A DNA stretch of 62,404 nt, filler included, from Choristocarpus tenellus KU-1152 (GCA_964200185.2; 11 parts of 11 records of this genome joined end to end with filler, not necessarily neighbours in it), one strand, 5' to 3'. Numbered from the whole stretch's first letter, positions 6,285 through 34,334 are shown. A program made the numbers and translations. Notes: generated by a model not told the origin, from the letters alone.

Positions 6285-7650
6285 TTGCACAACAGCAATG
6301 AATCGTTTCTTGGAGGAAGTTCGTTGAACAAAACCCCATCAGACTCTGATGACACAACAACCGTACTTGTTGAGCAACTAAAAACAACCCTGACAGAAGA
6401 CGGCTTACTCCCCGTGATTTGTCTTGAGCAGATTCGGGAAGAACCTGCCGCCACATTTGCCCAAGCTCATGACCATACCAAACGGCATAATGCCAACAAT
6501 CTGTCCGCCAATAATCCCACCCCCACAACTTACACTAGTGCTGTGATCCACAACTCAACTTTCGTCATGGAGAGGTTTCTCGTGCAGATTTTGTATAACT
6601 AAACGAGAAATCAACATCTCCGCACAGAGGTGGAGCGTCACCAAGTAGGGGAGGCAAACCTCAACAGATCATCAGCTCGTTTGTTGACACATCCACTTGT
6701 GACAACCCGTCCGGCTGACAGACCATCATCACCAACCTTGGATCTTCTGCACCATGCAGAGACCCCGCTACACCCCATTATCATGTTGATGTACACCAAA
6801 GCAGTGTATTCCAATGCCCTGGTTGTCAGGAGAAAACTCATGAGGGTCACTCAACCCATTCATGCCTAGTCAACCCAAACGGTGCTAGTAGGTCATACCT
6901 ACATCGTAGAGGGAGAGGTCATGGATATTGCGGTCGCGAAGATAGTTCCCTGTCACTATACTCCTCACTCCTAGGGGTGCCGAGGAGGATTTGACTCCAA
7001 TACATTTGGGAATGAGCAAGGTGTCATTGACACTATAGTAGGGAGTGACAAGTGTTGGAGATTGACACCAGTCACACCTCTTGCTCCCCAACAAGAGGTT
7101 ATTGCCTGCACGCGAGTCGCTGAGCTTTTTTCTATACCCTTAGTTCAATCAAACTCGTATGATAATAACCAAATTTGGTTTAATAGTGTGAAGCAGGCCC
7201 GAGGTGCAATACTTGATGGGCAAGAACTATGCTCTTGTTCCACAACAGCTTGTGTACCATTCCAGCCAGACATCACATGACAAGCAGCCCCACACTACAA
7301 GTACGTGATACAAATACCACTCCTTCATGCTCTGTAGTGAGTGTGCAACATGATTTTGACCCTGTACCTGTTCGTGTACATAGATAATACAACGTACCAG
7401 CTGGTCATGAAATCATCGTATGTTGCACAACTACCTGGTCTCTTAATACTGCCGTTGTAGTGGAGCTGGTGATGGGTTCTATGCCTGATGTAGTGCTATA
7501 GCACGTTCCAATGGCTTGTCTCCACAGGATGCATAGCTCCAATCCACAGGCCTTTAGATGACGCTGATGCTCGTACAAGGCTCCAGGATACTCAGACAGT
7601 CAACAGGTCCAATGCACAAGTCGTCAAGTATGCTGGATCTCTCACTTGGA
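6285..7650 (+). mobile_element. Probable LTR-retrotransposon (gypsy-like) debris
   Basis: Broken coding-like frames, e.g. VRVHR*YNVPAGHEIIVCCTT near 7370-7435, resembling the post-protease segment of gypsy pol. No decisive catalytic motif. Confidence 0.25.
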
Positions 7651-7949
7651 TTATTCCCTTCATAAATATAAGAATCATCACAAAAGGAACTGGCAACGAT
7701 AATCCACCTGAGGGCATGATAATAACTAAATAATAAATGAATAGTTAAGTATAAATATATTAAATCTAGGACTTCAAGGTCATAATGGTGTTTATGAAAC
7801 TGCCATCAAGACATATCGCCTGTAACGTGCCCCCCTAGCATGAAGCATAACTGCTTCAATACGATGAACAGGGGATTGGACAAGGAAATATAATGTCACT
7901 TCTTATCCTATCATGAACATAGCAGGATTGAAGTGAACGTCACTTCCAG

Positions 7950-8210
7950 GAGCCAAAGTATCTGAGAGGGTACGATTTTTTCCCTGTTTGTCCATTTGGG
8001 GCTTGGCTTCCCACGCCTTTTTATGATGACATTTTAACTACCCCAAAATCTTTCCGAGTAGGTAAAATGTGGAAGTTTTGAAAAGGAGTGTCTGGAACAA
8101 GGATATTGGCATCTCCTAATAAACATGATAGCCAAAATTACATTAAAATTGCAACATTGGATTTTGACCCCCAAATGGACGCGGCCCTACCCTCTAAGAT
8201 ACTTTGGCTC
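7950..8210 (+). mobile_element. Sola2-like MITE, complete copy (261 bp)
   Basis: TIRs GAGCCAAAGTATCTGAGAGGGTA / TACCCTCTAAGATACTTTGGCTC; 4-bp TSD CCAG at 7946-7949 and 8211-8214. Confidence 0.92.
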
Positions 8211-8773
8211 CCAGGTCCTAACATATCAGCAGGCAGTGTTAGGGATTCAGTGGAGCAGGATACCTGCAGGAAAAAACCTCTTCCAACGTTTGCCCTGACA
8301 ACAGATATGTTAGAGTGACACTCGCACCTCACGGCACTCACTCTGTACTTGACTCAGCGTTCAAAAGAAAACGTCCTACACCAGAGTCTCACACACATGT
8401 CACAAGGAGGGTACTGCCTGTCTAAAAAGACTCCACCCCTTCTAAGCTAATAAACACAAATACAGATACAAAACCATCGTAGCACTTAGCTTACTGTCAT
8501 AGACTCTCCCCCTTCAGAAAAAAAAACACAGCAACTACAGGACACCAAGACAATGTCTCACGGTCACAAGAGAGATTGGTTGCTACCATGGAAAGGCTTA
8601 CCCTCCCGACGAAGTGTGAACACACAAAAATATACAAAGGTTTTCCAATAAAAAAAATAGGTAGCGTCTCAGCAAGTTTCTCCCTCTTCGCAACTATCAA
8701 CACAAACGAATACAGGCATAAAATCATAATAGCACTGAAATAGGGTAATGCCATAGACTGTCCCCCTTAACTA

Positions 8774-9510
8774 CTACCTCCGTGCCATAAGTCTGTGCCG
8801 TGTTGTCCATAACTTTTGAAGATGATGATGAGATTCATTTCTGAAAGAAAATTTGGAACCCTTGATGAAGTTCTGGTTAGGGTCAGCTCTTTTCATTATT
8901 ATTAATCCCCATCCATCACAATTTTATCAGTCACAGAAGAGGTCTCCATGTCTACCTTCCGCGCGTTTTCAAGCTCACCAGACAACTGCCTCTTCTTTAC
9001 CCCTGTGTGCTCCACATCGAAGTCATTCCCCTCTTTGTATCTAAGTACTTGATTGTATACCACAAAAAGGAGCTGCCAAGCCCTCTCAAGGGTGGTTTCA
9101 TCATACTCCTTATACTGCTTCTTAATGGCCTTCATCATCTCATCAACGGACCCAAACCGCTCCCCCATCACCCGACATTTCAAAGACCTGAAGAAGCACA
9201 GGTCCATGATATTAAGGTTGGGGGAGTTAGATGGCTGTATCACAAGCCTAATCGACCACCCCTCAGTTTTCCCTTCCCCTGACAAGATTTCTGAGTTGCC
9301 CTTGACCGTGTGTGGGGTGGCACCGTCTTGCTGAACAACAACGTGCTTCCCCTGCAACCAAAGCACCTTGGTCTTGATTGCAGGCAGTAACTCCTCCGTG
9401 TACCACTTCCAGCACCATAAATGGTCTAAAGTACAGTCCAGCTCATACACATCCCCCTTTTTATGGTTCTTGTTTGTTCTATTTGCCGTTTTTAGCGCAC
9501 TACCTCCACC
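8774..9510 (-). mobile_element. Mariner-like (plant/oomycete DD39D-type) transposon: C-terminal transposase remnant plus right TIR
   Basis: ORF 8902-9450(-) has VVVQQDGATPH and QPSNSPNLNIMDLCFFRSLK; upstream is RTNKNHKKG. TA|CTACCTCCGTGCCATAAG at 8772-8791 resembles the Stowaway/mariner TIR CTCCCTCCGT. Confidence 0.85.
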
Positions 9511-10217
9511 TGCTTCGCAACCTCTTTTAAATAGAAAATTTGGTGGTATCGAAAAGTCTCCGCAGCTGCCTTTGTTACGATCGTTTCTCCTCCCCCTTGC
9601 GAGCCCTTTTGACCTTCTTTCGGACTTCAGAGCCCTTGCAGCCTAACCCTAACACCTTATTTCTCGTTTCCTTAATCCACTCTGGCTTGCATAGCTTCCA
9701 AACAGCCAGGGCCTGCTGCAACTGTCGACTACTGAGGTATTCTACACCTGCGTTTTTGCTTGGGTGATTCCTGAGGACAATGGCACACAGTCGCACTGCT
9801 CTCTTCCTCAATCTTCCCTTCGGGCGGCCACCCCGGTCCTCCCTTCGCCCGCTGTGACCAGACTTCCCCACAGACTTCGTCACTGTACCACCTGGTGATG
9901 GACTCGCCGCTCTCTTCCTGCTTTCCCGAGGTGGCAGAGACCGCAAAGCAGTGCTCCGCATCAGTTGAAGATCCAACCATGTTTGTGTGGTAATGCTTCC
10001 AATGAATCTTCTCTCAGCATCAGCATCGTGGCCCTATGATCCATTTCGCGATTTGATCATGTTGCTGCGCCACACTACTCGCACTTTCTTGTCACCTAAC
10101 AGCGCACTGAGTGTCACATGGTACTTGCTTTTCCGTCGTCTCTTGGCAGAGAAGGTGCTGAGGGTAGATCCAGGGGGAAGATTAGCCTCGGCGGCTCTCC
10201 TTGTCTCACACTCATGG

Positions 10218-10472
10218 TGTTGAAAAGCTTGGCGCATATAAGGCTCGTCGCCGAAAGCTAGTAGTTGAATTACATGGTAAAACATACACGGAATTATTAA
10301 TTGCCCGCCAGCCATCCATCATCTCTGATGTATGAATGAATGTTGACTTCTTATATTTTTATGCACGTTCGTACTTTGTATCATACCTAACTAATTATAT
10401 TCGTACGTATAACTTATGTTATATACTTGTGTCAGCACAAATAACATAAGGATAACACTAGGTTATTCGACA
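10218..10472 (-). mobile_element. Solo LTR of the copia family at 21947-27539
   Basis: 255 bp, TG...CA ends, the reverse complement aligns along the full length of both copia LTRs; perfect 5-bp TSD CATGG at 10213-10217 and 10473-10477. Confidence 0.93.
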
Positions 10473-11610
10473 CATGGATCATGTCCCTGTGTAAGTCATG
10501 CGTGTGCGTAAAAGGCGTTAAAAAATGTCCCGATAAAAAAATGTCCAGAATCTTGGAGTTTTTGTCAGTTTTTTTTTCGGTACAGCCACACCGGGCAAAC
10601 TTGGCAAGCGACGTACCCCGGACCACCAGTTATTTGCAAGGAGTTCAGCCAACTACTTCATTTTTGTCTGGTTGAAGTCGGGACCTTCAAAATTGCGCCG
10701 AAGATATTCCCCCTCGTTTTTTCCTTTCTTTGATCGGGAAATAGCTCCTGCTCCTTGAAGCCTGGACACTCGTGGATACAAACGTTCGAAAGCTCTTGCC
10801 ATACCCTTTCATTTGATATATCTAGTGTTGTATATCTGTTGTGGCGTTCGGGTGAAAAAAAGCAGAAACGCTACAGAGGGCGAAGCTACTGGTACAACCT
10901 TACTCTTTTTGCAAGAAAGGTTTGATGTACCAACCAATAATTGTATGTAATCTCTGACTCCAGATTCACTTTACTACTGTTTTTATTCAAATACTGTACA
11001 TCTTTCAACCCTGTCTCCTCTTTTTCCTGGCCAATATTATTTATTATCAAGCAACGTTTGAACAGGACCCCTAATAGTGGTTAAATAACTGATTAAACAG
11101 GGGATTTTCAAAATTGGGGATGGAGCGGGACTACGAGGATGGTTGTTTTGCGAAAACGGTCTTAAAAAAGNNNNNNNNNNNNNNNNNNNNNNNNNNNNNN
11201 NNNNNNNNNNNNNNTTAATTAATTAANNNNNNNNNNNNNNNNNNNNNNNNNNNNNNNNNNNNNNNNNNNNTTTTTTGGGTGTTTTGATAATTTTGTTTTT
11301 TTTTTTTTTTTAAATTTTTTGTCTGTCCCCCCCCCCCCCCCTCCCCCCATTTGCCATATGCCTGAAGTGCAGCTAATTAGTTCCCCGTTAGTGTTAGGAT
11401 TAGGGGTTAGGATTAGGATAGGGTTAGGTTTGTAGCTGGAGGAGTCTGCGTTCGCTACTTCTTCTGTAGAAGAGAAGACAGGTGTTTTTGTCTAAGGAAA
11501 GCGGTGTAAACGCCCTCTAGTTTTCCGGAAACACATGCGCAGGAAATCGGTTACAATTTGACCCTCCTCTGGGATAGAAGGGATACTCTCTTTTTGTTAT
11601 GTGAATGAAG

Positions 11611-11636
11611 GTTAGGGTTAGGGTTAGGGTTAGGGT
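11611..11636 (+). repeat. Interstitial telomeric repeat (TTAGGG)4
   Basis: GTTAGGGTTAGGGTTAGGGTTAGGGT; a degenerate tract also lies at ~11393-11428. Confidence 0.9.
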
Positions 11637-12287
11637 GTATGTGTACTTCTGCGTACTGTGTTATTTTATTACTGTATTATGGGTGACTGTTGTGTTGGAA
11701 AATGTGAAAGCATTGTCGGTTAGTATTGTGAGATGTTTTGATGGATCATGACTCGGTACTTTACATTGGACCTTTTGACAGTTACGGAGGACCCTTCTGA
11801 ACAGGGGGAAGCGCTTGGGGTGGTTCGAATTTGACTTTTTAGTGTGGATTGTTTCTGTAGTGGTTTGAAGACATGGTTTGAAGACATGGCCCAAGTGTTC
11901 TATTAGGTTGATGTACGTGTTGGTAGTGGAAGGAAGGCGTGGGTGAGTGTGGATAGGTCAACTCGTTTCTTACGGCATACTGGGGAAAACATGATTCTGG
12001 TTTGTTCTGGTGTCTTGTGAAGGGCTGTGTTACGACCAAGTACTGATATGCTAGCATTAGTGGTGGCATTTTGTGAGAGCATCCCGTCCATGTATGTACA
12101 AGTGGGGGTTCTTGAGGATCCAGGCATGTTTGTAGGGGCAATTTTCTGGTGTTTTTTTTTTCTTTCTCTAATTATCCCAAAGAGTTAAAGGGGTACTTTT
12201 TTGTGTCCTGGTGAGTTGTTCCATGGTTTAGGTATTGTACCTGTTTTTGGCTAATGTAGTTGATAGGAAATTGATGAGAGATTAGTA

Positions 12288-12466
12288 GGAGATGAATAGG
12301 AGATTAACAGGAGATTAACAGGAGATCAACAGGAGATTAAAACAGGAGATTAAGAGACCGCTGAGAGATGATGTGATTAAGAGACCGCTGAGAGATGATA
12401 TGATTAAGAGACCACTGAGAGATGATGTGATTAAGAGACCGCTGAGAGATGATGTGATTAAGAGAC
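12288..12466 (+). repeat. Compound minisatellite: ~11-bp GGAGATTAACA units, then four and a half 27-bp GATTAAGAGACCGCTGAGAGATGATGT units
   Basis: 27-bp period starting at 12348, 12375, 12402, 12429 and 12456. Confidence 0.9.
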
Positions 12467-13524
12467 GCGATTCTCGTGGTACTTGTATAGTATATGTACA
12501 GCAGGTGGTATGATGTGCAAGTATAGTTTCATTTGAGGGTGCGGAGTGTCCTGGTTTTTCATGCTAGCAATGTCCTAGTCACATGATTTTTTTTTTTTAC
12601 ACACTTATCCATTTTTTTTTCTTTGTAGGATATTGGGCTCTAGAGTAGTGCAAGTATGTTTTTGACTTGAACACTTTAGCGGCGGAATCATAGGCCTGAT
12701 GAATATTGTGTTGACGTATTATTCAAATAATAGGTTGATATCAGTGAATAGGTTTGTAGGGTTAGAAGATTTGGTCAGATGACTCGGCATAATTTTAGTC
12801 TTAGTAATAGTATTAGTATTTTTTTTGTATTAGTACTTGTAATTGTATTTGTATTAATGTTAATAGTAGTAGTAGTATTAACATCATGTACTGCACAAAG
12901 TTCAGACTGATTTTGACAAATATTGATGTCAGTTCTCCAATGGGGCAGACAGTTACGGCCTTGCGACTATCTGTCCTGGTGGAGTAGTGGTATCTCAATG
13001 TTTGACAAAAAGGTTTATTCTCTCTGATGTTTGTTTGGACGTTTTATTACTGTTTTATTTTTATTTTATTGGTTCAGTCTGAGATTGTTTATCTAGTGAT
13101 GACAACTAGATTGACCCGTGGTCAGAGGACACCATACATTGTACTAGTTGTCATCAGTTGTCGTGGTAACTACCTCTAAAGCAAGAACTATTTTTTTTTA
13201 CCAACATCTGTAACAATTGCATTGTAAAAAATTGTATTGTAACTATTATAACTATTATTATTATTATTATTGTTATTGTTATTGTTATTGTTCATGCTAC
13301 CCCTTGACATTTCTTGCTGGTTGGGTTGAGCCACTTCACTGGTCGTGGGTCTGCCTCCTCACTCAAATCTAGTGAATACTTGCTTCCCTGCAATGGAGAG
13401 CCTTGACGCCACAGTGAAGTTTATTCAGATTTTTTTTGTGGTTTAGTGACAGACAGGAGGGTATAGGTGTAACTGTAGTCTGTGCTTTCCATGTAGCCCA
13501 TCGAATCGGATTTTATTGAGAAAA

Positions 13525-13650
13525 AAAGACTCAACTTCTATTAGGTTTGAACTTGAGTGTTCCAACAAAGACTCAACTTCTATTAGGTTTGAACTTGAGT
13601 GTTCCAACAAAGACTCAACTTCTATTTGGTTTGAACTTGAGTATTCCAAC
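13525..13650 (+). repeat. Tandem repeat, 3 x 42 bp
   Basis: AAAGACTCAACTTCTATTAGGTTTGAACTTGAGTGTTCCAAC head-to-tail with no spacers. Confidence 0.92.
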
Positions 13651-14384
13651 CATCGAAGCTGGTAGGATGGTGGTGACCTGCGAGGGTGCTCATCCTTCTA
13701 TTGCAGTTCTGTGTCATCCGACCCGCTGTTGGATATGGAGAAACAATTGTATCCAAAAAATCGATATTGTTAGGTGATTTTGACATCTCAAATTGGAGAC
13801 TCCTGCGAACCAGGTATTGGGAGGGTTATCGATGTATTGGTATGGTGTTACAAGGTATGCCACCAAGATACACGTACACAACTGATGGTATGCGCTTCAA
13901 TACTCTTACACTGCCGCTAACTACTCTGTTACTTTCTTTTATACTGAAGAAAAACTAAAAATGCCAAAAAAGATGATCGACTGGATCTATCAGTTCTACG
14001 TTTACACATGTCCCTCCCTGGTTGGATTTTATTTATTTTTTTACGAATATTTTTTTTTACTGTTTTTCAACTGAACACTTTTTTTGGGGGATTTTTTTTT
14101 TGTGGTTGACATTCTTGGGGCCTGAGATTTTTTTTTTTTCCTCAAGAATTTTGAAAGTGAAGATTCGTAGGTGCTCACGTCGTCATCTGCAGGTGTGAGG
14201 AAGAAATTTAAACCATGTCCTTAGCCTTTTTAGCGATCGATTTCAGTAATGCAAGAGAAAAACATTCTGTGCTCTTGTTTCAGAAGCATTTATGACCTGT
14301 GATTGCATGAGTTGCATCTTGGAATACAACAGCAATTTGGGTTTCTAATCCGACCTTGTGAATAATGATATGTGAAATTTGGTA

Positions 14385-14447
<63 letters not shown>

Positions 14448-14613
14448 CCTCCCCCTCCTTCTGGGGCCTGGCCGCTCCCCCCCCGCGCTCGCGCTCCGGT
14501 TTTCGCCAGGTTGNNNNNNNNNNNNNNNNNNNNNNNNNNNNNNNNNNNNNNNNNNNNTTAATTAATTAANNNNNNNNNNNNNNNNNNNNNNNNNNNNNNN
14601 NNNNNNNNNNNNN

Positions 14614-14789
14614 CATGTTTGTTAGGAGATGACAATATCCTTGTTCCGGACACTCCTTTTCATAACGTATGCATTTTACCTACTCCAAAGCATTTTGGAG
14701 TAGGTAAAATGTCATTAAGAACCCGTGGGAAACCGATCCCCAAATGGACAAACAAGGAAAAACTTGTACCCTCTAAGATACTTTCACAC
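14614..14789 (-). mobile_element. Sola2-like MITE, partial copy at contig start
   Basis: Ends TACCCTCTAAGATACTTTCACAC; has the central 18-bp-stem hairpin CATTTTACCTACTCCAAA-GCAT-TTTGGAGTAGGTAAAATG at 14672-14711. Confidence 0.88.
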
Positions 14790-16415
14790 ATATCCCATGC
14801 AGACATATTTTGAGAGTACACCCCCATCTGTTTACTCCAGAGTAGTACTATATGAGAATGACTGTGCATAAGTACATAATTCATGAGTTCAATTTCATGA
14901 CGAGCAGGAAAACAATATACTCAAAAAAGCCCAAGACTCAATTCTAGTTGACGCAAGTATCTACAACCCTAACCTGAGTGTGTTCCATCATGATTTCTTA
15001 ACATCGTCAACATCATGACAAGTCAAAGAGCCCACAGAACCTTCCACACCGCCTACAAACTGCACAAACATAAACCACCACCATGGTCTGGGAAGTTTGA
15101 CACGTTCTTTGCACGCCTGAGCACCCTCATGTGGTGCCCAATTCCATGTCCCTTATGCCCTTTCATTTGCAATGTGCGAAAGCCAGGTACATACAGAGTA
15201 TAATAAGAGACGAACAGAAATCTTTGAGAAAAGCAAGAAGGAAGAGGAGGCACGAGAGTTCTTCCTCAAAAACAATGACAAGTGGCAAGCAGAGATCCTG
15301 GTACAAAAGGCTCGCAGGGAGGAAGAGGGCAGAGAGGGGGCAGAGGGTAGCACTAGGGCACAATTGATTGCACACGGAGTTGAAGCCCGTCACAGTAAGT
15401 TGCAACATGAGGCATAAGGTGCCCTGCATACTTGAGTGTGCAAATTGCCAGCCATCTCCAGTGACTGTTGAATCAAGTGGATAAAGAAATGGAATTTTCT
15501 GAATGTTCAACTTACAAAATTAATATAATTCTGTCTCGTATCGGCACAAGGTATCAAATTCGATTTATGAAGGAAAGTCTAAATTTTAGTTCACGGATTC
15601 ATGTCTATTCTCATTCCTTTTTTCGCAATTTGGGGGTTATCCTTCCCAACAATCATTCACATCATTTTCGATTTCCCTCAAAATGCCAATTAATAAAGTG
15701 AATAGTGTACAGTGCAAACACCCTAATATGTACATCATATCCTTTTCCTCGGTACAGTTTGAAGCACAAGCAGGGAAAGTTGTGGCAGGATAAAATGAAG
15801 AGGAATCTACTAAGTTATCCATATATAATAACGAGGAGCGGTCTGGGATGCTACTGAGTCCTTTTATTACAGACTTAAACAACATTAAACATGAATGTAC
15901 TTGTGCCATTTCCTCTCCACTATGGAGAGAGATTTGCTAGAGCAGTCTTTACCTGGCAGTGTGGAGAATACCCATTGTACATCACGGGTTCACTATGTTT
16001 CAACAAGTACATATATTTTGGGCGGTGTGGAGTAATAATGGAGCTTGAGATCTACGAGTGATCCATTGGAGTATAGAAGACTGAGGACGCTGGTCAGCTG
16101 TTGGACCCATGAAGCATAATGATTCCTGAGATTTTTTTCACTTTATACTCAAGATGTTTCAAAACAATTGACCATACTTGGGAGGAGTGTGGACCGTGTA
16201 TACTGCCTCAGAAGTTGATGTTTGAGGTAAAAGACAAGAGCTGACTTTGCTGGACTTACGTGAAAAAATGGTTGTTTGTCTTGAAGTTGACACAGTGTAA
16301 GTTGTGGTTGGTCTGGGTTGCAGATGATATTTTTCTGTAGCACATATTTCTCATTTTTTTTTAACGCGCCTGTTTTAGTGGATGCAATATTTGAGTGAAA
16401 CTGCCGTTTTTGAGC

Positions 16416-16678
16416 GAGTGAAAGTATCTTAGGGTTAGGGTACAAGTTTTTCACTGTTTGTCCGTTTGGGGCTTGGCTTCCCACGGGTTTTAAGGACATT
16501 TTACCTACCCCAAAACCATTTCTGTGTAGATAAAATGTATGTGTTATGAAAAGGTGTGTCCAGAACAAGGACATTGATATCTCCTAAAGAGCACAGTAGC
16601 CAAAATTACATCAAAATCACAACATTGGATTTTGGCCCCCAAATGGACGCGACTCTACCCTCTAACATACTTTGACTC
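16416..16678 (+). mobile_element. Sola2-like MITE, complete copy with TTAGGGTTAGGG inside the left TIR
   Basis: GAGTGAAAGTATCTTAGGGTTAGGGTAC ... TACCCTCTAACATACTTTGACTC. Flanks GAGC/AGCT give an imperfect TSD. Confidence 0.88.
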
Positions 16679-21543: not shown

Positions 21544-21804
21544 NNNNNNNNNNNNNNNNNNNNNNNNNNNNNNNNNNNNNNNNNNNNTTAATTAATTAAN
21601 NNNNNNNNNNNNNNNNNNNNNNNNNNNNNNNNNNNNNNNNNNNCCCCCAACAAACCCCCCCCCCCCCCCCCCCCCCCCCCCTCCCCCCCTTCTTTCCCCC
21701 CCCCACCAACCACCCCCCCCCCCCCCAAAAATATTAACTCAAACAACACACACCACGGGGGTGGGGGTCGCGCCCCCCCCCCCCCCCCCCAGATACTTTG
21801 ACCC

Positions 21805-21856
21805 TGGATTTTCACCCCAAATGGACGCGGCTCTACCCTCTAAGATACTTTAACTC
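21805..21856 (+). mobile_element. Sola2-like MITE right end, apparently interrupted by the G-rich sibling
   Basis: TGGATTTTCACCCCAAATGGACGCGGCTCTACCCTCTAAGATACTTTAACTC. Confidence 0.8.
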
Positions 21857-22931
21857 AACGTCAAGACGGACTGTGGTAGTGGACCTGCAGCACCTCATCC
21901 CACTTCCTACAAAATTTGTGGTGTACAATGGTGACGGTGATGGAGATGTCGAATAACCTAGTGTTATTCTTACGGGCTTTTTGCTGACACAAGTATATAA
22001 CATAGGTTATAGGTACGTTTATATTTTGTTAGGTATGATACAAAGTACGTACATGCATAAAAATATAATAAATCAACATTCATTCGCACGTCAGTGATGA
22101 TGGATGGTTGACGGGCAACTAATAATTCAGTGTGTGCTTTACCATGAAATTCAACTGCTAGCTTCTGGCGACGAGCCTTACATGCGCCAAGTTTCTCAAC
22201 ACGCTTTAGCGCCTAATCCAAACTCTAGCTAGAGGAGGTGCAGCCGGACTGGTTTGATTTGAATTGGTACTGCATCACCCATGGCCTCAGATGGGACCCA
22301 CACCAAACTCCTTCAGCTTACAGATGACAACTATGCAGACTAGTTCGCTACAACCCATGCATTTTGGGGGGCAAAGGGGGATATTGATGAGGCATTGGAG
22401 TATACGAGGGAACCCATCAGAGTGGGTGACATTGAATTCACTAAGGGGGAAGATGTCAGTGAAGAAGAGGTCACCAGGGCCAAGAACGCTTATGACGCCC
22501 TGCTGAGGAGCACAAGTGGGATTTACCGTTGTATAGTCCGCAATGCTGCCTCACCTTCAGGAGCCTGGAAACAACTACGGGAACACTTCCTTATTCAGTC
22601 AGATGAGGAATAGCCAGACTCTAAAGGAAAGTTATGATGGTCAAAATGCCTCGGGGGTCAGACCCCCAAATCGCTTTCACGATGATGCTGGACTGGGTTG
22701 GCCAGATGGCGATGATGGGGCACGTGATGTCCGAGCAGGTCCTAGAAATCGCCATGTTAGACTGTTTGGATGACGACTACCAGATCACCAAACACTATCT
22801 TCAGCACCATAGTAAGAGTGAGCGTTCGAGAGCCACGATACGACAAGCTGCTCGTTCGCGCTACTTCTCTCTCCAACGGGAAGCAGCTGATTGCGGGGAG
22901 CCAGGGAGCACTCTTTCCGCTCAGACCCAGC

Positions 22932-23189
22932 GAGTGAAAGTATCTTAGAGGGTATGAGTCTTGCCCTGTTTGTCCATTTGGGGCTCGGCTTCCCATGGGT
23001 TATTTTATGAGATTTTCCCACTTCAAAAGTTTAGGAGTAGTTAAAATGTATATGTTATGAAACGTGTGTCCAGAATAAGGATATTGACATTTCCTAACCA
23101 ACACGATAGCTAAAATAACATCAAAATAGTAACATTGACCTTTGGCCCCCCAAATGGACGCAGCTCTACCCTCTAAGATACTTTGGCTC
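22932..23189 (+). mobile_element. Sola2-like MITE inserted in copia gag (258 bp)
   Basis: GAGTGAAAGTATCTTAGAGGGTA...TACCCTCTAAGATACTTTGGCTC; TSD CAGC at 22928-22931 and 23190-23193. Confidence 0.94.
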
Positions 23190-24492
23190 CAGCAAAAGGC
23201 TAAACGAGGAGGCAACCAAGGTATGACTGGTCATCGTACACACCCTGAGATGACAGGATCCCGTCCCAGGGGGCTGACCAGGGCTAAGGAAATATGCACA
23301 AGGTGCGGACTGGCAAAACACACGGGTCCTTGCACATATAAAGGACTGTGCTGCAGCTGCGGGAGCAGAGGCCACCAGCAAGCTGTTTGCTCTCAGAGGA
23401 GGGCAGGACCACCACAGTCGGTGGGAAATTCATATCGCCAGAGGGCGAATCCGCTCAAGTTGGCGGAAGAACTAACTGGATGAGAGGAACCGGCTAGGCC
23501 AGAGAGGAAATTTAAGAACATGATAGCCGCAATGACTAACAAAGGTGAGGTAAGTTTGAATGCTCTCGAACGAGGTGTTTTGATTTGGGGGCCTCCAATA
23601 GTGTGACAAAAGACTCGACTCATATGTATGAATTCGCCACATGTCTACAAGGCCATAAAATGACTGTGGCTGACGGCACATCACTGCCCATTGTAGGGTA
23701 CGGCAAAGTTGATTTGAATTTCAATGTTGGCCACGATGAGTGGGTGAATTTTATGCTGACGTCTGTTGCACTTGTCCCGAAGATGCTTTTCAATCTTCTC
23801 TCTGCACATTCTGCTAGTAGGGCTAAGGAAGTGATCATCAAATTGAGTAATGATGCATACTACATAGATGATGGGGAGGATTTTCCGCTCGTTTTAAAGT
23901 GGAATGGATCCATGTACGCAGCTAACGCCGAAAGGTTGCCACCCCCAGAAGAAACACCTTTGGCCGCAACTGTCTCTTCAACACCCATGCACATCAACGT
24001 TTTTCACCGCATTCTCAACCATGCAGGTAAGCGAATCCTTTGACGAACAGCACATGGGCAAGGAATCACACTGCCTGGGAATCTAACATCGACAAAGTGC
24101 ATAGGATGCGCAAAAGGGATTAGGATAAAAGATAGCGTCCCTGAGTCCACCAATGTACGCACTAGGGGACCCTTCACTCGCATTTTTATTGACCTTACAG
24201 GACCCAAGACAGTCAAATCCCTCTGTGGGGCTGAGTATGCCCTGGCAATTGTCGATGATGCGTCTCGCTTCACATGGATACGACTACTCCAGAAGAAGAG
24301 TAATGCTGCCAAGGCCCTTAGACGATGGTTCAGGGCTGAGGTACTCCCCAGTGGGCGGCGAGTTCACTACATTCGACATGACCCAGGGGGTGAGTGACAG
24401 AGTGAGGAATTCCAGGATTTGGCGACGGAAATGGGTGCGGTGCAGGAAATGACTAGGACAGGGGAACCTCAGAATAATGGTACTGCCGAACG

Positions 24493-24751
24493 GAGCCAAA
24501 GTATCTTAGAGGGTAGAGCAGTGTCCATTTGGGGGTCAAAATCCAATGTTGTGATTTTGATGTAATTTTGGCTATCATGTTTGTTAGTAAGCGTCAATAT
24601 CTATGTTTCGGACACAACATTTCATAACTTTTACATTTTACCTAATCCTAAACATTTTGGACTAGGAAAATGTCATAATAAAAAACGTGGGAAGCCAAGC
24701 ACTATAGGGACAAACAGGGCAAAACTCGTACCCTCTAAGATACTTTCACTC
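24493..24751 (-). mobile_element. Sola2-like MITE inserted in copia integrase (259 bp, opposite orientation)
   Basis: TSD AACG at 24489-24492 and 24752-24755. Removing the element and one TSD restores the integrase motif NNGTAERRIAQ. Confidence 0.95.
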
Positions 24752-27539
24752 AACGTCGCATCGCCCAAGCGGATAGTGGTCCCAGGGCCAGCATTTATTC
24801 TGCAGGATTGGGAGATAAAATATGGTTGTGGGGAGAAGCTTACAATCACTCAGCCTACATCCTCAACAGAAGCTCAACTGTTGCTAATAAGGGGATCTCC
24901 CCCTATTGTGCACTGTATGGGGAAGTTGGATCTCTAGCTGGTGTCCCAGCTTTTGGCTCACCTGGATACTACAAGTCTATTCCTGGACACAAGCTTGGAA
25001 GCCGTGGGAAGCAGTGCATCATGGTTGGTATATCATCTGAAAATCAACCCCGTGGCACCTTCCGCGTACTAGGATCCGGTACTAACCGTGTGCTTCAGAG
25101 ATCCAACATACATTGGCACCCCACCAAGGATGGCAGAGTTCGTTTTCCAATATCTGATTTAGACCGAGATCAAGAACATTTGGATGACACTCCAGGGTAT
25201 ATCCTTCCTCCACATGCACGCAGAAGGACTGAAGACATCCAGGAGATAGGAGATGGATGTGATGATGATGATGGAATCACCTGGATATAAGGTGGACTAG
25301 AAAATGATAATGGATCTGAAGACACCTGAGATAATGGTGAACTTGTGGAGGAGATTGAGGACAACATTTATGGTGACAACGAGGTGAAGGAGACTGAGGA
25401 CAGCAATGATGGTGATGATGATGGGGTGTGGATGAGGCCAAGGACAGCCAATGTGAAAGGGAATTACGACGACTCAGCATTGGAAATGGTGAAGACAACA
25501 TCCTTCCCCACCGCACCAGATCAGGAAATCATCCTACTTCCGCAAAAAATGCTGTTTTTAACATAACCATTTTTTTATTACTTCTTTTCCTGTTTCCATA
25601 GAGACTACCCTTGTGATGTGTGCGAGTGATGATTCTATTAGAGTGTTAGCTAATGAACTCCCTCCAGAACCCAAGACTGTAAGAGCAGCACATAGCTCTC
25701 CCGAATGCAATTTATGGGATCGAGCTAGAGCAGAAGAAATCTCTGGTTTGTTACTGAATAATGTTTGGGTGAAGGCAGTATTACCCCCTGGACGCAGGGC
25801 AATAGACACTAAATGGATTCACAAGCGTAAGACTAACAAATTTGGGGAAGTAGTTAGATACAAGGCACGTTTGGTAGCAAAAGGTTTTCGAAAGAGGGTT
25901 TAGATTACCAAGATACCTTTGCACCAACATCGTCCCCTACGTCTTTGAAAATGGTACCAGCATTAGCTGCAGACAAGGATTGGGAATTGAAGCATTGGGA
26001 TGTGAAGCAAGTATTTATACAAGAAGAGATTTGTTAAGAGATTTTTGTTCGTTTATGTGATGGATGTGGTATATGGTCTGGAGATATTGTGCGTTTAGTC
26101 AAGGCACTTTATGGCACCAAACAGGCTAGCAGGGAGTTTAATAATCTGTTGATACACGTTTTGGAACAGTGTGGTTTTAAGTAATGCAAAGCATATCCCT
26201 GTGTATTACGCTATGTAAGAGATGGTGTTTTTGTGCTGTGATAGCCCCTCGCGAAGATGATCTTTTGGTAGCTGGTGAAACTGATGCTTTGATTTGGGTT
26301 CGCTCTAGGATTAAAGAGCAGTTTTCCATATAAGACTTCGGTGATCTTGAGTATTATATGGGTTGTGAGATTCCACGTGACAGAACTGCACAGACTGTCA
26401 CCATCAGTCAGACTAGGTACATTGAGAGTGGGTTTGTCAAAGATTTGGTATGGATGGGGCAAAGAAGAGGTCGGTACCCCATGATCTCTCAAGGACTCTA
26501 GAAAAGAGTGAGAATCATCCAAGTGTTGATGAAAGTACACCGTACAGAGAGGCAGTTGGTAGTCTGATGTGGGCATCTCTTGACGAGGCTGGACATTGCA
26601 AATGCAGTTCGTGAAGTTGCCAAGTACAGTAGCGATCCCAAAGTCACACATTGGCGTGCAGTGAAAAGTATTTTAGCTTATTTGAATACGTGTCCCAGTG
26701 TTGGATTGAGTTTTGGTAGTTTTGATACTGAGTGTGAGTTGAGTGCGTATGCTGATGCTAGTTATGCTGGAGACTGGAATGATCGTAGATCAGTGACTGG
26801 AGGAGCAATAATGTTTGCAGGAGGAGTAATATCTTCGATGTCAAAGGTACAAAGAGTTGTAGCTCTGTCTTCCACGGAGAGTGAATACATAGCTCTTAGT
26901 TTTGTGGCACAGGAATTACTTTTCTTGCGAAGCGTTTTTGGGTTTATTCAGCCACAGTTTCCTAGGCGTTGCATTGATATGATTGAGGACAACAATGGTG
27001 CCTGCGAACTAGTACGAAATGCCACAAGCTCTACTAGAACAGAGCACATTGATATCCGACATCATTTTCTGAGGGACTTGTCTAGAAAAGGAGAAATTCA
27101 TGTTGTTTTTGTTGGTACTGCAAACCAGAGGGCAGATGTACTGACCAAGAATATGCCAGTTCGAGTTTTTAGGCAGCATGTGAAGTTTTTGATGAACATT
27201 TGAGACAACATACGTGTGTGTGTGAGTGTGTTTTTTTTGTGATTGTTTGAGAGTTCATACTTGTTTTCAGCAAGGGGAGGATGTCGAAAAACCTAGTGTT
27301 ATCCTTACGTTATTTATTTGTGCTGATCAAGTATATAACATAGGTTATATGCACGTTTATAATTAGTTAGGTACGATACAAAGTACGAACGTGCATAAAA
27401 ATATAATAAGTCAACATTCATCCACACGTTAGTGATGATGGATGGCTGGCGGGCAATTAATAATTCAGTGTATGTTTTACCATGTAACTCAACTACTAGC
27501 TTTCGGTGACGAGCCTTACATGCGCCAAGCTTCTCAACA

Positions 27540-27973: not shown

Positions 27974-29084
27974 TAGTAATTATTGTGATGTGGTAGTGAC
28001 AAATTACTAGGTCAGGCAGGCTCAGCAGATCAAGGCTCAGACTCATTCCCTCCTACACACGATTTCTTCTTCATCTCGCGTACCCTTTTCTTCTTGTACG
28101 TGACTAATCCTGAGTTTCGTTCATCTTCAATAAACTACCACTGAGTTTTTTTTGTCACATGGAGTTTTTTTCCTGTTGTGGTAGTGATGGATGGCCTCGA
28201 ACATGGTAGTAAACCTTTTTTCTCCGCTTGGGTTCTTTGCAAGTATGATCTTGGAGATGTTGACATTAGAAGACGTCCTCATATTCTTGGGAATTTACAT
28301 AATACATTAGTCTTTTTTTCACTTCGCTTGTCACCCTTCCCCCTATCTTTTCTCATGTGTATCTGTTGTGATGTATTATGTCAACGTCTGACTTCCTTTT
28401 GATTACCGTCTAAAATCCCAAATTAGTGTGAAGGAACAATAATAATACCAGTTCTAACATAGTCCAATGCTCAATTTTTTGGAAGGACCAGGAAACTTGG
28501 TCTCACATAAAAAAAGAACTCCCCCATCATTTTACAATGTCATCCTCGTATCAATCCAGTCATCGGGCTACTTGTTGCTTCAAGTTGTTGATACATCCAT
28601 TCAATTCAGCAAGTATTTTTTTAGTTTATTGAACTATCAAGTACTTGGGTCACTTGCTAGTTTAGGTTCTGTCAATATATTGTATTTCGTCTGATTAGAA
28701 GTTTGACGGATACAGACTTCCAATTGATATCAAATATTTTGTACTCTTTGAAATATTTCATGTATCCATGATCGAGAACCAACTATATTTAGATACTCTC
28801 TTTACTTCCTTTACAATACTCCACAGGTAATACTCATTCGTGATGCAGGAACAATTATGGGCGTTTCAATGTTGAACATGAAAAAGAATTATTACCACAA
28901 AAGATCATAGAGAATCCTCCGAACATAATAATTTTTCTGGATAATTTAACACCAAAGAAAATAAGAAACAGTCGCCAACACTGTGCACTCTCCCTCCACC
29001 CAAACTCTACCACCTCACACCCACACTCACAACCCATACTCGCCATACAAGGAAAGAAGTAAGGATCTAGTCAATCGTGAAGCC

Positions 29085-30391
29085 ATGAAGCTCTGCTCCT
29101 TTGCCTTTCTCGCCTTCCTCGGACTCAGCGCTGCTGGAACCACTCTTCGTGTAGATGCTGCCGAAGAGGACTTCCAAGGTCGCGACCGACAACTGAGGGT
29201 GAGGACACTCGGCTTTATGTGCAAGCCCGCGACCTACTTGCCTATTCCCAACATGATAGCGTAAAGATGGATGGAATTGATGGTGCTACTCTTCTACTTC
29301 GCTCTCCAACACCCCTGCAACTTACCCTTGTTCTTCGTTTTTTGCTTCATCCTAAATTATTTTCTGTTTCGTAATGAATCTCAAAACGGGGATTGCGCGG
29401 ATTGTGCAACATCATGGATGACATAGGGACATGCGGGCGTCGATGAAAGCGAGACATACCACACCATGCGTGTTCTGGGGGTGAGGATGTTTTGGATTTA
29501 GTTAACATTCAACACGTGATGAGTACCCCACAGGGTCATCAACTTGGTTTCTATCAAATATTACATCATGAGAAACAACATTTTTGTGTCACAAAGGATT
29601 AACTGGAACTGTCATCATAGGTCCTGCTGTGCTACATAGCAACTTTTGATGAACCACATTTAAGAGCGAAGTCATTGGGGCGCTTCTAGAATAATCTACG
29701 ATGATTCAATTTTCAAAGTGGTCCTTCGTCTGACAAGTTGGAGGACTACTCTTTACCTTAGAATCATGGTATATACCGATTTGTGTTACGTTGCATACGG
29801 GAACAAGGAGAGAGGTGGATGTTGTCTGGTGGGAAATACCCATCATATATGTGTAAGGATGCTTGGTTGTGTGGCGAAGGTGCAGAGGACAATGTATTAT
29901 TTCAATTGCGTAATGGAATCTTATTCAATACAACTCTAGAAGCTATTGATTCAGTTGACTTGAGGAATACAGAACGAATGTGCTTCTGCTGTGTTTTGCA
30001 TAGAAAAAATTGACGATTGACGACGAGTTCACAACGATTGTTTGACGTCAACGAAATTGTGAGTACATGTTTTCCTGTCTAACCGAATCTCATACATCAC
30101 CTCCTTTTCAAAATGCGAAATCACATGCCTCATCCGCTGATTCCACTCCAATGACTCCCACTCGTTCTTCTCCATCAAATGACTCAAAAGGGCTCGTACT
30201 CCAAGGACTCGTACTCCAAGGACTCGAAAGATTCGTACTCCAAGGACTCCTACTCCAAAGACTCGAAAGATTCGTACTCCAAGGACTCCTACTCCAAAGA
30301 CTCGAAAGATTCGTACTCCAAGGACTCCTACTCCAAGGATTCAAAAGATTCGTACTCCAAGGACTCCTACTCCAAGGACTGGAAGCATTAG
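29085..30391 (+). CDS. Small secreted Ser/Lys/Asp/Tyr-repeat protein, silaffin-like; exons 29085-29198 and 30191-30391 (104 aa)
   Basis: Exon 1 encodes MKLCSFAFLAFLGLSAAGTTLRVDAAEEDFQGRDRQLR and ends at a GTGAGG donor (phase 0). Exon 2 follows a pyrimidine-rich tract and AAG acceptor, in frame: GSYSK(DSYSKDSYSKDSK-type units)...DWKH*. Differences between repeat units are synonymous only in this frame. The splice junction is inferred. Confidence 0.75.
30191..30385 (+). repeat. Coding tandem repeat, 5 x 39 bp
   Basis: Unit GATTCGTACTCCAAGGACTCCTACTCCAA(A/G)GACTCGAAA. Confidence 0.95.
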
Positions 30392-33300
30392 GTTCAATCG
30401 CCATGTAACATGGGTAAGGAAGTCGTAAGGCATAATTTTCTACTCAAATTTGTCGCTGAATTCAAACGGCGATACCTCATAAGTAAATCTTGCTCCTTCC
30501 CCCACTCTTGGACAACCTCGTCTCCCTTTGCAGTCTTGCTGAGTTCCTCCACGGTTGAGAAGGTGACCGTTTTTTCAATTCCGAGCAAGAGCAACGTCTT
30601 CCGTGGGATCATTTCTATCTTTTGAGATCTAGTGCCAATTGGGAGTCTAGCGGTCTAGGTTGACCCCTTTCATGCAGAACTGGATCGCTTCGTACAGTCC
30701 GTGACTTCGATAGACCATCGAAGTTCAGAAAGCGAATGTGAATTTTGAAAATCTTGATGATACCTAACAGTATCTGATGATGCGTGAAGTACAGTATCAA
30801 AAACTCCAAGGTAGATGCTTTTATATGTGTCACAAACGGGGATAATCTGCATTTCACGCATAGGACCTCCTTGTGGCTGTGTGCTCTGGCGTTGCCTTCT
30901 ATAGGTGTACCAGAAAAAACACACTTGCGTGCAGTAGGGTAGGGGTTCGATGTGGGCTCAGGGGGCAGGGAGCTTAGGGATGTTGTCTGTAGGCAAGGGT
31001 GCTGCGCACCAAGTCGTGTTAGTCGTCGAGATTGGTGCCTAAACTCACGACGAAAGTTGACTAAGGTCGTGATCGAGGATTGTACCCACAAGCTGGCTTT
31101 TGTATGAGCGTTTTGTGGAACATATTGGTACGTGTTCGTTTCGCGAGAAGTTTGTACAGGGATACACACTTTTGGTTGTCAAAGTGACAGGCAGGACACC
31201 CTGGCAATCCGAAGCAATGTGTGGTCTCGAACACTGCATTTCTGCGCCGAATTAACAAAAATGAACTCTTCACAGAGTCAAACGTTTGAAGTAATACACA
31301 GGCGGGAATCAACACAGATTTCTACCAGCCGCTATGACAGAGAAAGGTACTTCTTTCGGGGTTTTTTTGCTGCTCACAGGTTTGGGGCAATATTTAGGTG
31401 CAGCAAGACACGCACATGTGTAGTCGAGTTGATGCCTTTTCTAAAATAGCCTCTTCCCTCCCTTCGAGATAAAACATTGAAATATTCGCGCACGCGCGCG
31501 TGTGTGTGCATGTTGACTGTTGAACCACCTAGTGTACATAATGTGTGATGTGAGGAATTGAGTTTTATATTCTAAGTACCACAACAGGAAAAGAAATTCA
31601 ACTTACCCATGATATCTCCTCATAAGTCTTTGTTATCAACTAAAATATTGCTGGTATTTTTTGTCAACGACAGCAAATGAAAACCCAAACACCACAGGAG
31701 CCCCCTCTCAGATAGGATAAGCTCAAAATGACAGTCAGAATAAACTATATTCATACACGTATGAGTAGTGTTCGTAGATAGTGCTGCTGATACAGATAGA
31801 CATCACCGGTGGATTATGTAATAGGATGGAGCGCCAGTGACAGATCTATTATATGTACTGACTCATAGTGTCGATTGATTTTATGTCAAGATCAAGATAC
31901 ACTTTCTATACTTAAGACAAGTAAATAAGTGATTCATAGTAAATTAGTGTGGACGATTACAAACCCCACACTATAGAAATAATAATGATAGTTTAGGCTG
32001 ATCTCATCCACGTATTCAGTCAGAAGAATTGAGATCATAAGGCCCCTTGTAGTATTAACTTTTGCATATCTACTTCAAGCTATTCATTGTCATTCATCAA
32101 AGCACAAAAGCCGCAGGTCCAGAGTGGGATACTTCAAGTAGTAGGCTGGGGAAGGATCTTAGCTTCTTGACCTAAACACGAATTTTTTCCAGCCTTGGTA
32201 AATTTTGAACCAGACACTTCACAAGTTGGATGGATAAACAGTATGAAAGTGTCGTGTTGACAGTTGTGGGTATATAATCCACTCTTGTTTCTGTAGCTGC
32301 CCAATCAACAAGAAATCCTCAAGAATAACAAGTGGATCATCTGTCTGTTTAAATCCAGCAAACCTTTAAGTTCCTTTTAAATTTGATGTTTTTCTGGAAA
32401 CGCGCACCTTTCAACCGTTCAATTTGCGATCGTGTACCCCTATATTTTTATAAGACTCACAGATTGCCCCCTATTAGTGTTGTCTTACGTTGCATCTCAA
32501 TCCCTGTTTATATCCAAGCTTGCTTAAATCAATGGTGGATCCCATTGAGGTAGAGTTCTTCAAAGGTTCCCCAGTGTGTGTTTGGTGTTAACCTTCCCAG
32601 TATTGAATTGTGATCTCTCCTATCTTAGTTCTATGTGCGAGTAGCAGCACTGAAATATCTAAGACTTCTTTTACGACACAGTTTTTCTTCACACTTTTAA
32701 ATTACACCTGCACATGGGCAAAGGCCTGTTTCCTGGGTAGATTTTATCACACAGCATAAGACGAAGAATTGTGGGGGACACTTCTTTTACTGCTAGAGGT
32801 TTTTCTCTCTAATACTCCCACCCAGGAATGCCTTATCTGGTGCATGCATGTGTCTGCTCCCATTGTGAAGTTAGCGGTTGAAGCAGACAAATAATAATCA
32901 TTTGAGCGAGTTAGTCTTATGTGGTCCGTTGAGGAAAAGGTAGGCTGTATATGAGGCTTCCTATTAAGCATGTTTTCTTTCTTGCAACATCCTGGGGGGG
33001 GTGTTACGAGCACGGATCTTACACTTGGCAGGCGTTTCCCCACTAATGCCATCATTTTCCCCTGTACTCTACTTTGACGAGGGCCTGCAACTCTGAAAAC
33101 ATTATGTGATCCATACAAAGCAAAAGCGACACGATTATGCACTCTGCAGACCCTTCCTCTATCAAGGATATATGTTCAGGACCAAACCAATTGAGAGGTA
33201 AAGCAGGGTTTCATTTTAAGGATCCCCAGAAAGGGCAGAAAGACACTATTTTATAAAATTGCAAAAAGAACCTTTGGTGGGTGGTGGTGTCACTTTGTGT

Positions 33301-33542
33301 GTGGATAGGAGGAATGTCAATATGCGTACAGTATAGTCCACATCATGAAATGAAAAGGAGAGTAATATTGCACAGGGTAAGAAAGATGGCTTAGAATGCA
33401 TAGGGTCCAAATCTGCCTACCTCTCAACTGGTTTGACTCTCAGACTCCCTCAGGATTCACAGTGTCAAGGTTCACATCAACGAACTTGAGCAGACTCATT
33501 GGCACCCTGCAATACACTTGTAGGTGTATACATATCATAATA

Positions 33543-34062
33543 CTACCTCTATGCCATAAGTTTGTGCCGTGAAACATCTGGACTCACCGAGCGAGAACAG
33601 TGTCGAATCGGACCATAATCCTACAGAATGAAATCGGGTTGACAATCTCAGCTTTGAGAAAAGGTGGGGGTTGAGGAACATCAGGTAAAAACTCGAGGTG
33701 CTTCAAGCCATCAAAGTAGGAATCCTTTGGGATGATTTTGAGGCCAGAACTGGGCACGTTGAGGGTCAGAACGTTGGCATGGCAACCCCCCCCCCGCGTA
33801 AGAAGGGTACCCAAGTGTCCCTGAATACCTGGATTGCGTTTGCAGTGTGGCACGTTCTCACGGTGGTCCCTGGTGAGCATAAACTACTGCGACACGTTGG
33901 GTCGGCCCTAGCAGCGGAGTTTGGAGTGTCCGAGCGTTACAAGTGAGGGCTCTGGGAGGACGTCGCCGATGAGCTTGCCCGTGGCCACACGCTTGACCTA
34001 GGGGTGGCGGTATGTAGTGGGCGGCCTTCAGAGCTCACACCGACCAAGATGGCCACAATACA
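33543..34062 (+). mobile_element. Mariner-like transposon left TIR and N-terminal HTH remnant, cut by a G-rich MITE sibling at 34063
   Basis: TA|CTACCTCTATGCCATAAGTTTGTGCCGTG nearly matches the TIR at 8774. The frame LAAEFGVSERYK*GLW...DL...SGRPSELTPTK is the HTH/GRP region of Tc1/mariner transposases. Confidence 0.75.
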
Positions 34063-34334
34063 GGATCAAAGTATCTGGGGGGGGGTGTCGGCGTCCGTTT
34101 TTCACGCTTTTTTCCATTTTCACTTTTTTGTGTCAGATTTGAAATGTCAGTAAAAAAAAGAGTACTTTGACCGAAACGGACGCCCCCTCACAAGCCACCC
34201 CCCCCCCCCCAGTAGCGCTAACCCCCCCAGCATCNNNNNNNNNNNNNNNNNNNNNNNNNNNNNNNNNNNNNNNNNNNNTTAATTAATTAANNNNNNNNNN
34301 NNNNNNNNNNNNNNNNNNNNNNNNNNNNNNNNNN

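Follow-up and report, generated by a model that had tools for sequence, protein, structure and literature searches.

Positions 29085–30391 of the window (the whole stretch of DNA that was analysed, 62,404 nucleotides with filler included) hold an unannotated nuclear gene that is transcribed and spliced on the + strand. It is very probably a real secreted-type repeat protein gene of the brown alga Choristocarpus, with a product of 122 amino acids that comprises a predicted 18-residue signal peptide, a 38-residue acidic propeptide and a 66-residue repeat domain. The fuller reading, in which this product is a lineage-specific secreted polyampholyte that organises the extracellular matrix or acts as an adhesive, is the one that we favour, and we regard it as probable but well short of assured. 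A preliminary description made from the sequence had proposed a two-exon gene for a silaffin-like peptide precursor.

Gene structure and transcription

The exon structure is based on contigs from four runs of one public study (designated X1–X4) aligned to positions 28700–30700. Runs X2 and X3 are DNA-like and have an even depth (~86 and ~23, respectively) over exons and introns without joints, whereas X1 and X4 are RNA-like and contain contigs with GT..AG joints that connect 29198 to 29427 and 29480 to 30191. Because the joints are confined to X1 and X4, and X2 and X3 cover the introns evenly, the spliced sequences do not come from a retrocopy. A single 233-nucleotide contig from X4 spans all three coding exons. 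X1 contigs reach a depth of 10,758 over exon 1, of tens of thousands over the repeat and of 5,400–16,500 over the 3′ untranslated region (UTR), as against ~41 over the introns, so that within the same run the exon depth is ~260 times that of the introns. The gene thus has three coding exons and an additional intron in the 3′ UTR, arranged as follows.

29043..29084, + strand: 5′ UTR, minimum extent (the transcript contig starts at 29043), from X1 and X4 contigs
29085..29198, + strand: coding exon 1, 38 codons, from spliced contigs; signal peptide at 29085–29138, RQLR at 29187–29198
29199..29426, + strand: intron 1, 228 nucleotides, GTGAGG..AG, phase 0; joint in X1 (depth 10,758) and X4
29427..29480, + strand: coding exon 2, 54 nucleotides or 18 codons, from spliced contigs; RVL at 29469–29477
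29481..30190, + strand: intron 2, 710 nucleotides, GTGAGG..AG, phase 0, from a contig joint; acceptor AG at 30189–30190
30191..30391, + strand: coding part of exon 3, 66 codons and TAG (30389–30391), from the sequence and spliced contigs
30392..30413, + strand: 3′ UTR, first part, from contigs
30414..30533, + strand: 3′ UTR intron, 120 nucleotides, GTAAGG..GCAG; boundaries deduced from an X1 joint
30534..30698, + strand: 3′ UTR, second part, which extends past 30698; X1 depth 5,400–16,500

The boundaries of the 3′ UTR intron are derived from an X1 joint between 30403 and 30533 with 11 intervening letters, which correspond to window positions 30404–30413 plus a 2-nucleotide insertion of the DNA allele. 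All three introns share one orientation, which assigns the transcript to the + strand. The coding junctions are all in phase 0, both coding introns begin with GTGAGG, and the lengths of exon 1 (114 nucleotides) and exon 2 (54 nucleotides) are multiples of three. Skipping of exon 2 would keep the frame, and a rare isoform of this kind is compatible with the contig data. The transcript has no ATG upstream of that at 29085 and, since several frames are open over the repeat, it is splicing from this first ATG that sets the frame in which the repeat is read.

The preliminary description had joined position 29198 directly to 30191. No contig supports that joint, and the spliced contigs of X1 and X4 show that the 54-nucleotide micro-exon at 29427–29480 had been missed. 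The same GT..AG joints bear out the remainder of that model, namely that the gene is spliced and expressed from the + strand in the frame that had been chosen.

Protein product

The product was read exon by exon. The predicted signal peptide begins with M-K, which is followed by a 14-residue hydrophobic core (Kyte-Doolittle value above 2 over residues 3–14) and small residues at −3 and −1, and by these rules it would probably be cleaved after residue 18 (AAG/TT). A plastid bipartite presequence was considered and rejected, as position +1 is not aromatic and the region after the signal is acidic. The acidic stretch of exon 1 ends in RQLR (residues 35–38) exactly at the GTGAGG donor at 29199, as had been described beforehand together with the hydrophobic signal and the ATG at 29085. 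Exon 2 encodes a further acidic, His-containing part of the propeptide with RVLG at its C terminus. The architecture originally proposed, with RQLR joined directly to the repeats, is therefore incorrect, because the 18 residues of exon 2 lie between them. A second R-x-L motif (RVL) is located two residues before the repeats. When the 38 propeptide residues were shuffled, at least two RxL motifs were present in 3.7% of the shuffles and an RxL ending no more than two residues from the repeat in 3.2%. The paired motifs are suggestive of processing sites but are neither compelling nor proof of cleavage.

Exon 3, which follows the AG at 30189–30190, encodes the 66 codons and five 13-residue units that the preliminary description had assigned to its second exon. 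The five 39-nucleotide units start at 30191, 30230, 30269, 30308 and 30347, and Tandem Repeats Finder reports a period of 39 nucleotides, 4.9 copies and 94% matches. Each unit encodes a pair of D-S-Y-S-K pentads and a single D-S-K triad. The exon starts with G, and its last unit reads ..DWK before a final H and the stop codon. The domain has a mass of ~7.7 kDa, an isoelectric point of ~8 when unmodified and a net charge close to zero. It contains 36% Ser, 23% Lys, 21% Asp and 15% Tyr, is without Cys, Pro or hydrophobic residues, and has Asp and Lys in strict alternation along its length. Of its Ser residues, 14 are in an S-x-D context and 10 in S-x-S, both of which are of the type recognised by the Golgi casein kinase. 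There are five K-x-x-K motifs, one in each unit, and no cleavage motif (dibasic or RxL) between units. A sulfated Tyr peptide of the plant type was rejected, as D-Y does not occur and every Tyr is flanked by Ser.

The pre-pro layout, the basic and RxL motifs just before the repeats, the small size (122 residues) and the abundant transcript would also suit a precursor of diffusible bioactive peptides that act in signalling, defence or as antimicrobials and are not components of a matrix. However, with no dibasic or RxL site between the five units, one product of 66 residues would be expected; its net charge of about zero and lack of hydrophobic residues are unlike those of antimicrobial peptides, and the D-Y context of plant-type sulfation is absent. 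We consider a bioactive precursor improbable.

Constraint on the reading frame

Over the repeat, all three + frames and one − frame are open. Among the five units, eight of the 39 columns vary, and six of these are synonymous changes at third positions. Relative to the consensus, that of unit 2, the differences between units change a residue in two of 10 cases in the transcript frame, both at the edges of the array, as compared with nine of nine and seven of eight in the other frames, and the earlier observation that unit-to-unit changes are synonymous in this frame is upheld. The GC content at codon position 3 is 0.80, against 0.24 at position 1, 0.39 at position 2 and 0.40–0.45 in the introns. 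Tyr is encoded by TAC in all 11 cases and Ser by TCC or TCG in 24 of 27. Because the unit differences are mostly synonymous in the translated frame, GC at the third position is high, and Tyr is always TAC and Ser nearly always TCC or TCG, the open reading frame (ORF) is under codon-level constraint, which points to selection on the peptide.

These features bear on the alternative that the gene is an orphan that arose recently in this lineage and has little or no selected function, being a minisatellite that is transcribed and by chance lies in frame behind an exon resembling a signal peptide. The openness of four frames across the repeat would fit such an origin, as would the decayed retroelement immediately upstream and the absence of relatives in the protein, Pfam, ESM Atlas and metagenome searches described below; the near-identity of the units could likewise reflect recent expansion or concerted evolution and not purifying selection. 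Against it are the restriction of synonymous unit differences to the translated frame, the third-position GC content with the biased Tyr and Ser codons, the three precisely spliced phase-0 exons that maintain one ORF from the first ATG, and a transcript depth that is very high relative to the introns. On balance, an orphan of this kind is unlikely.

Search for relatives

Relatives were sought separately for each exon or ORF. Exact-sequence look-up of the 70-residue repeat ORF, and of a 207-residue ORF from the neighbouring copia retrotransposon, returned no record. In word-indexed protein searches, the repeat ORF (window of 38–122 residues) gave 1421 candidates and the exon 1 region (window of 51–163 residues) gave one, with none scored in either case. 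An exhaustive phmmer search with exon 3 against 1.84 billion representative proteins gave 16 weak matches (E ≤ 1e-3) and no match to itself. Six of the 16 were inspected and rejected as relatives, being unrelated periodic low-complexity proteins with DGYNK, DGFGK or PSYS-like repeats. Although the annotation of C. tenellus is included in this collection, there was no self-match, which indicates that the gene is absent from public predicted proteomes.

Pfam at E ≤ 10 had nothing for exons 1 and 3, the top score in the ESM Atlas (0.79) was at chance level, and of the 437 pattern matches from a translated scan of metagenome contigs at JGI none was confirmed. On the 12.6-kb piece of the window that carries the gene, Rfam identified nothing and no paralogue of any exon was found elsewhere. 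A literature search for silaffins and brown algae yielded no report of such a protein.

Origin of the contig

The copia element lies on the same piece, just upstream of the gene, and provides a means of assigning its host.

21990..27539, + strand: decayed Ty1/copia long terminal repeat (LTR) retrotransposon; LTRs at 21990–22201 and 27328–27539

It has an RVT_2 reverse transcriptase domain (3e-10), a Pol_BBD pol β-barrel domain (1e-10) with integrase-side domains, and flanking direct LTRs of 212 nucleotides that are 89% identical, and its gag/pol region is broken into at least eight ORFs. The longest of these matches ~20 C. tenellus proteins at 72–94% identity, proteins of Discosporangium mesarthrocarpum at 54–70% and all others at 48% or less. 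In DNA comparisons, two C. tenellus contigs (GCA_964200185.2) are 88% identical to the element over 1.2 and 2.0 kb, with matches that extend into the non-coding LTR; a Discosporangium contig matches over 351 nucleotides only, at 67.5%. The element belongs to a multi-copy family in C. tenellus. The GC content is 0.44 both in the piece and in C. tenellus contigs. Because the linked element and the GC content match its contigs, the contig is assigned to C. tenellus or a very closely related alga. Intron lengths of 228 and 710 nucleotides, together with the spliced UTR, fit the brown algae, which are intron-rich.

An alternative origin, in which the contig is a contaminant from a diatom or other epiphyte and the gene an ordinary diatom silaffin-like gene, would account for the silaffin-like composition, and algal cultures and assemblies can carry contaminants. 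It is at variance with the 88% DNA identity of the linked element to C. tenellus contigs, including the non-coding LTR, with the lower match in the sister genus Discosporangium, with the equal GC content, and with introns and a spliced 3′ UTR that fit brown algae; furthermore, no related diatom protein was found. This alternative is largely refuted and extremely improbable, and the brown-algal host that had been surmised from other contigs is substantiated.

In the 2024 brown-algal genome paper, Choristocarpus is placed with Discosporangium in the Discosporangiales, the earliest-branching brown algae. The NCBI taxonomy lists Choristocarpus under Sphacelariales, and automated lineage labels for the genome are consequently misleading.

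Comparison with silaffins, adhesive proteins and RxLR effectors

The product shares with the diatom silaffins (Cylindrotheca Sil1p/natSil-1A and Thalassiosira tpSil1-3, cingulins and SFLPs) an endoplasmic reticulum (ER) signal, an acidic propeptide with RXL, and low-complexity repeats rich in Ser and Lys. Further similarities are Tyr in a Ser/Lys context, a K-x-x-K in each unit and the zwitterionic character that it would have if the Ser residues were phosphorylated. In contrast to the silaffins, it has no sequence homology to them, its host is a brown alga without known silica walls, and it is Asp-rich (21%) and lacks Gly and Pro apart from the G that opens the repeat exon. Sil1p has RXL between its units; here there is none, and one product would be formed rather than several peptides. 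Silaffins proper are constituents of biosilica in silicifying organisms and carry phosphoserine and polyamine-modified Lys.

The compositional screen of Scheffel, in the form quoted in PMC3478156, calls for at least 18% Ser and 10% Lys per 100 residues together with an ER signal peptide, and the present protein passes it, with 25 Ser and 15 Lys in the C-terminal 100 residues and a signal peptide by rules. RXL, described as the canonical site at which silaffins, cingulins and SFLPs are cleaved, is present here as RQL(R) in exon 1 and as RVL two residues before the repeats, both being predicted sites only. SFLP screens also call for repeated KXXK motifs, in which X is S or G, separated by 1–6 residues (PMC5501833), whereas the five motifs here are K-D-S-K (X = D, S) and successive ones are 9 residues apart. 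Nor is there a pentalysine cluster (five Lys in 12–14 residues), as the maximum is three Lys in 12–13 residues and four in 14. The silaffin-like designation of the preliminary description thus stands with regard to composition and RXL but not with regard to KXXK spacing, the pentalysine cluster or RXL between units, and the likeness to diatom silaffins holds only in composition and general layout.

The protein also passes the screen of Buhmann et al. (2014) for mussel-foot-like proteins, which requires a signal peptide and a domain of 50–200 residues with more than 8 mol% Tyr and 20 mol% Lys; exon 3 encodes 66 residues with 15.2% Tyr and 22.7% Lys. Since both screens are passed, composition does not single out silaffins. 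Like the adhesive proteins of mussels (fp-3 and fp-5), the sandcastle worm (Pc3) and Amphora coffeaeformis (AC203 and AC3362), the product has a small secreted domain rich in Tyr and Lys with an aromatic residue that could be cross-linked, many potentially phosphorylated Ser residues and the character of a polyampholyte suited to coacervation. It differs from them in having no homology and no Gly- or His-rich context. We know of no instance of 3,4-dihydroxyphenylalanine (DOPA) formation in brown algae. AC3362, which like AC203 was found with the Buhmann screen, proved to belong to the wall and not to an adhesive, an outcome that illustrates how weak calls of function from composition are.

Given these comparisons, it is very unlikely that the product is a functional silaffin analogue, in the sense of a phosphorylated, Lys-modified and zwitterionic peptide able to bind or precipitate silica or some other mineral. 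The composition screen, the RXL motifs and the one KxxK per unit speak for such a role, and there is a report of biogenic silica deposited at the wounds and sori of a kelp. However, the host is not a known silicifier, the KXXK spacing, pentalysine cluster and inter-unit RXL of silaffins are all lacking, 21% Asp is unusual for silaffin peptides, the mussel-foot-like screen deprives the composition of discriminating value, and no diatom homologue was found in the protein searches.

With the RxLR effectors of oomycetes, the protein has in common a signal peptide and a four-residue motif in a stramenopile, and RQLR, at residues 35–38, lies within the usual distance of the effector motif from the N terminus (~30–60 residues). 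This part of the match noted earlier is retained. The remainder is not, as there is neither a dEER motif nor a WY or other effector domain (Pfam is blank), and the host is not a pathogen but a free-living alga. Moreover, the motif belongs to a propeptide, with another RxL and the repeat domain downstream of it.

Proposed function

In the reading that we favour, a secreted matrix-organising or adhesive polyampholyte, the precursor would be imported into the ER and its signal peptide removed. The propeptide would then be cut in the secretory pathway at RVL, a site of the diatom RXL type, and/or after RQLR, a sequence that conforms as well to the minimal R-x-x-R pattern of convertases. Cleavage would release a single disordered repeat peptide; one product rather than many small peptides is expected, as the units are not separated by cleavage motifs. 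The released peptide would probably be exported to the cell wall or extracellular matrix, where its Lys residues could interact with anionic alginate or fucans and its Asp residues, possibly along with phosphorylated Ser, with Ca2+, and where Tyr could be a substrate for oxidative cross-linking by a haloperoxidase or peroxidase. The Phaeophyceae gained vanadium haloperoxidases at an early stage, and these enzymes are associated with adhesion and the chemistry of the wall. Many of the genes that the brown algae gained when they originated code for secreted proteins.

Several considerations weigh against this interpretation. Contig depth is a poor guide to expression. The spliced contigs differ from the window at five of 155 positions in the 5′ UTR and exon 1 and at three of 54 in exon 2, and so represent a variant that is ~3% divergent and may be an allele, a strain or a near-identical paralogue or copy; one of the differences (29097 T>C) would alter residue 5 of the signal peptide. 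As the exon 1 and exon 2 transcripts come from this variant, they are not strict evidence that the window's own copy of these two exons is expressed. The signal peptide call depends on rules, RxL is a motif of low information content, and secretion, cleavage, phosphorylation, cross-linking and location are all predictions from the sequence. With no orthologue or paralogue found in the searches, conservation cannot be used as evidence, and orphan genes of low complexity can be young and functionally marginal.

The proteins of brown-algal walls and adhesives are almost unknown as compared with the polysaccharides and phenolics, and the gene provides a concrete candidate for one of them, abundantly transcribed in the earliest-branching lineage and overlooked by automatic annotation. 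It is also a clean test case for the occurrence of diatom RXL processing outside the diatoms, and its importance would rise sharply if RXL processing or a mineral or adhesive activity were demonstrated. That compositional silaffin-like screens catch a protein of a non-silicifying organism is a reason for caution in their use.

A broader proposal is that the ochrophytes inherited from their ancestors a means of matrix building in which an RXL-type propeptide is removed and a zwitterionic Ser/Lys/Tyr repeat peptide set free. Diatoms would have recruited it for silica, whereas the earliest-branching brown algae would use it for wall assembly, adhesion or the poorly understood deposition of silicon reported in brown algae. 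We regard this as improbable; if true, the gene would be the first example outside diatoms and would offer a handle on the unknown RXL protease.

Sequence variants and neighbouring features

Within the region of intron 2 from 29571 to 30222, the DNA-like runs contain two variants that differ by ~5–8%. The variant identical to the window has the lower depth (28.7 in X2 and 7.5 in X3) and the other the higher (89 in X2 and 13–25 in X3); upstream of 29571, these runs have only the non-window variant, to which the transcripts of exons 1 and 2 also belong. Allelic heterozygosity, a recent duplication or a mixed culture could give rise to this pattern. In both RNA-like and DNA-like runs, contig ends at 30198–30232 run into other repeat-like sequence, approximately ..D-S-K-S-K-D.. 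and ..D-K-K-D.., which may belong to repeat-variant alleles or to paralogous genes elsewhere in the genome.

Run X4 is labelled as a different organism but contains this spliced transcript at a depth of ~5, and it departs from the window there in the same way as X1 does. Because X4 belongs to the same study as X1, carry-over between libraries or a matter of labelling is more likely than an orthologue, and the X4 transcript is not counted as independent support.

Downstream of the gene, from 30615 to 34234, there are only short ORFs without Pfam matches, for example one of 184 residues on the − strand at 30615–31169, and no second gene was recognised. At the edge of the piece there are two poly-C runs, 21655–21726 (72 nucleotides, 83% C) and 21773–21790 (18 nucleotides of pure C), for which an artefact of assembly or sequencing, or a contig end of low complexity, is the probable explanation. 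A sequence of ~42–50 nucleotides recurs in both orientations within or near the copia element, at 21815–21856, 23148–23189, 24710–24751 and 22932–22981. The same sequence is found, with 94–98% identity, at the end of a C. tenellus contig (5073–5122); a small dispersed repeat and a scar left by recombination are both possible explanations.

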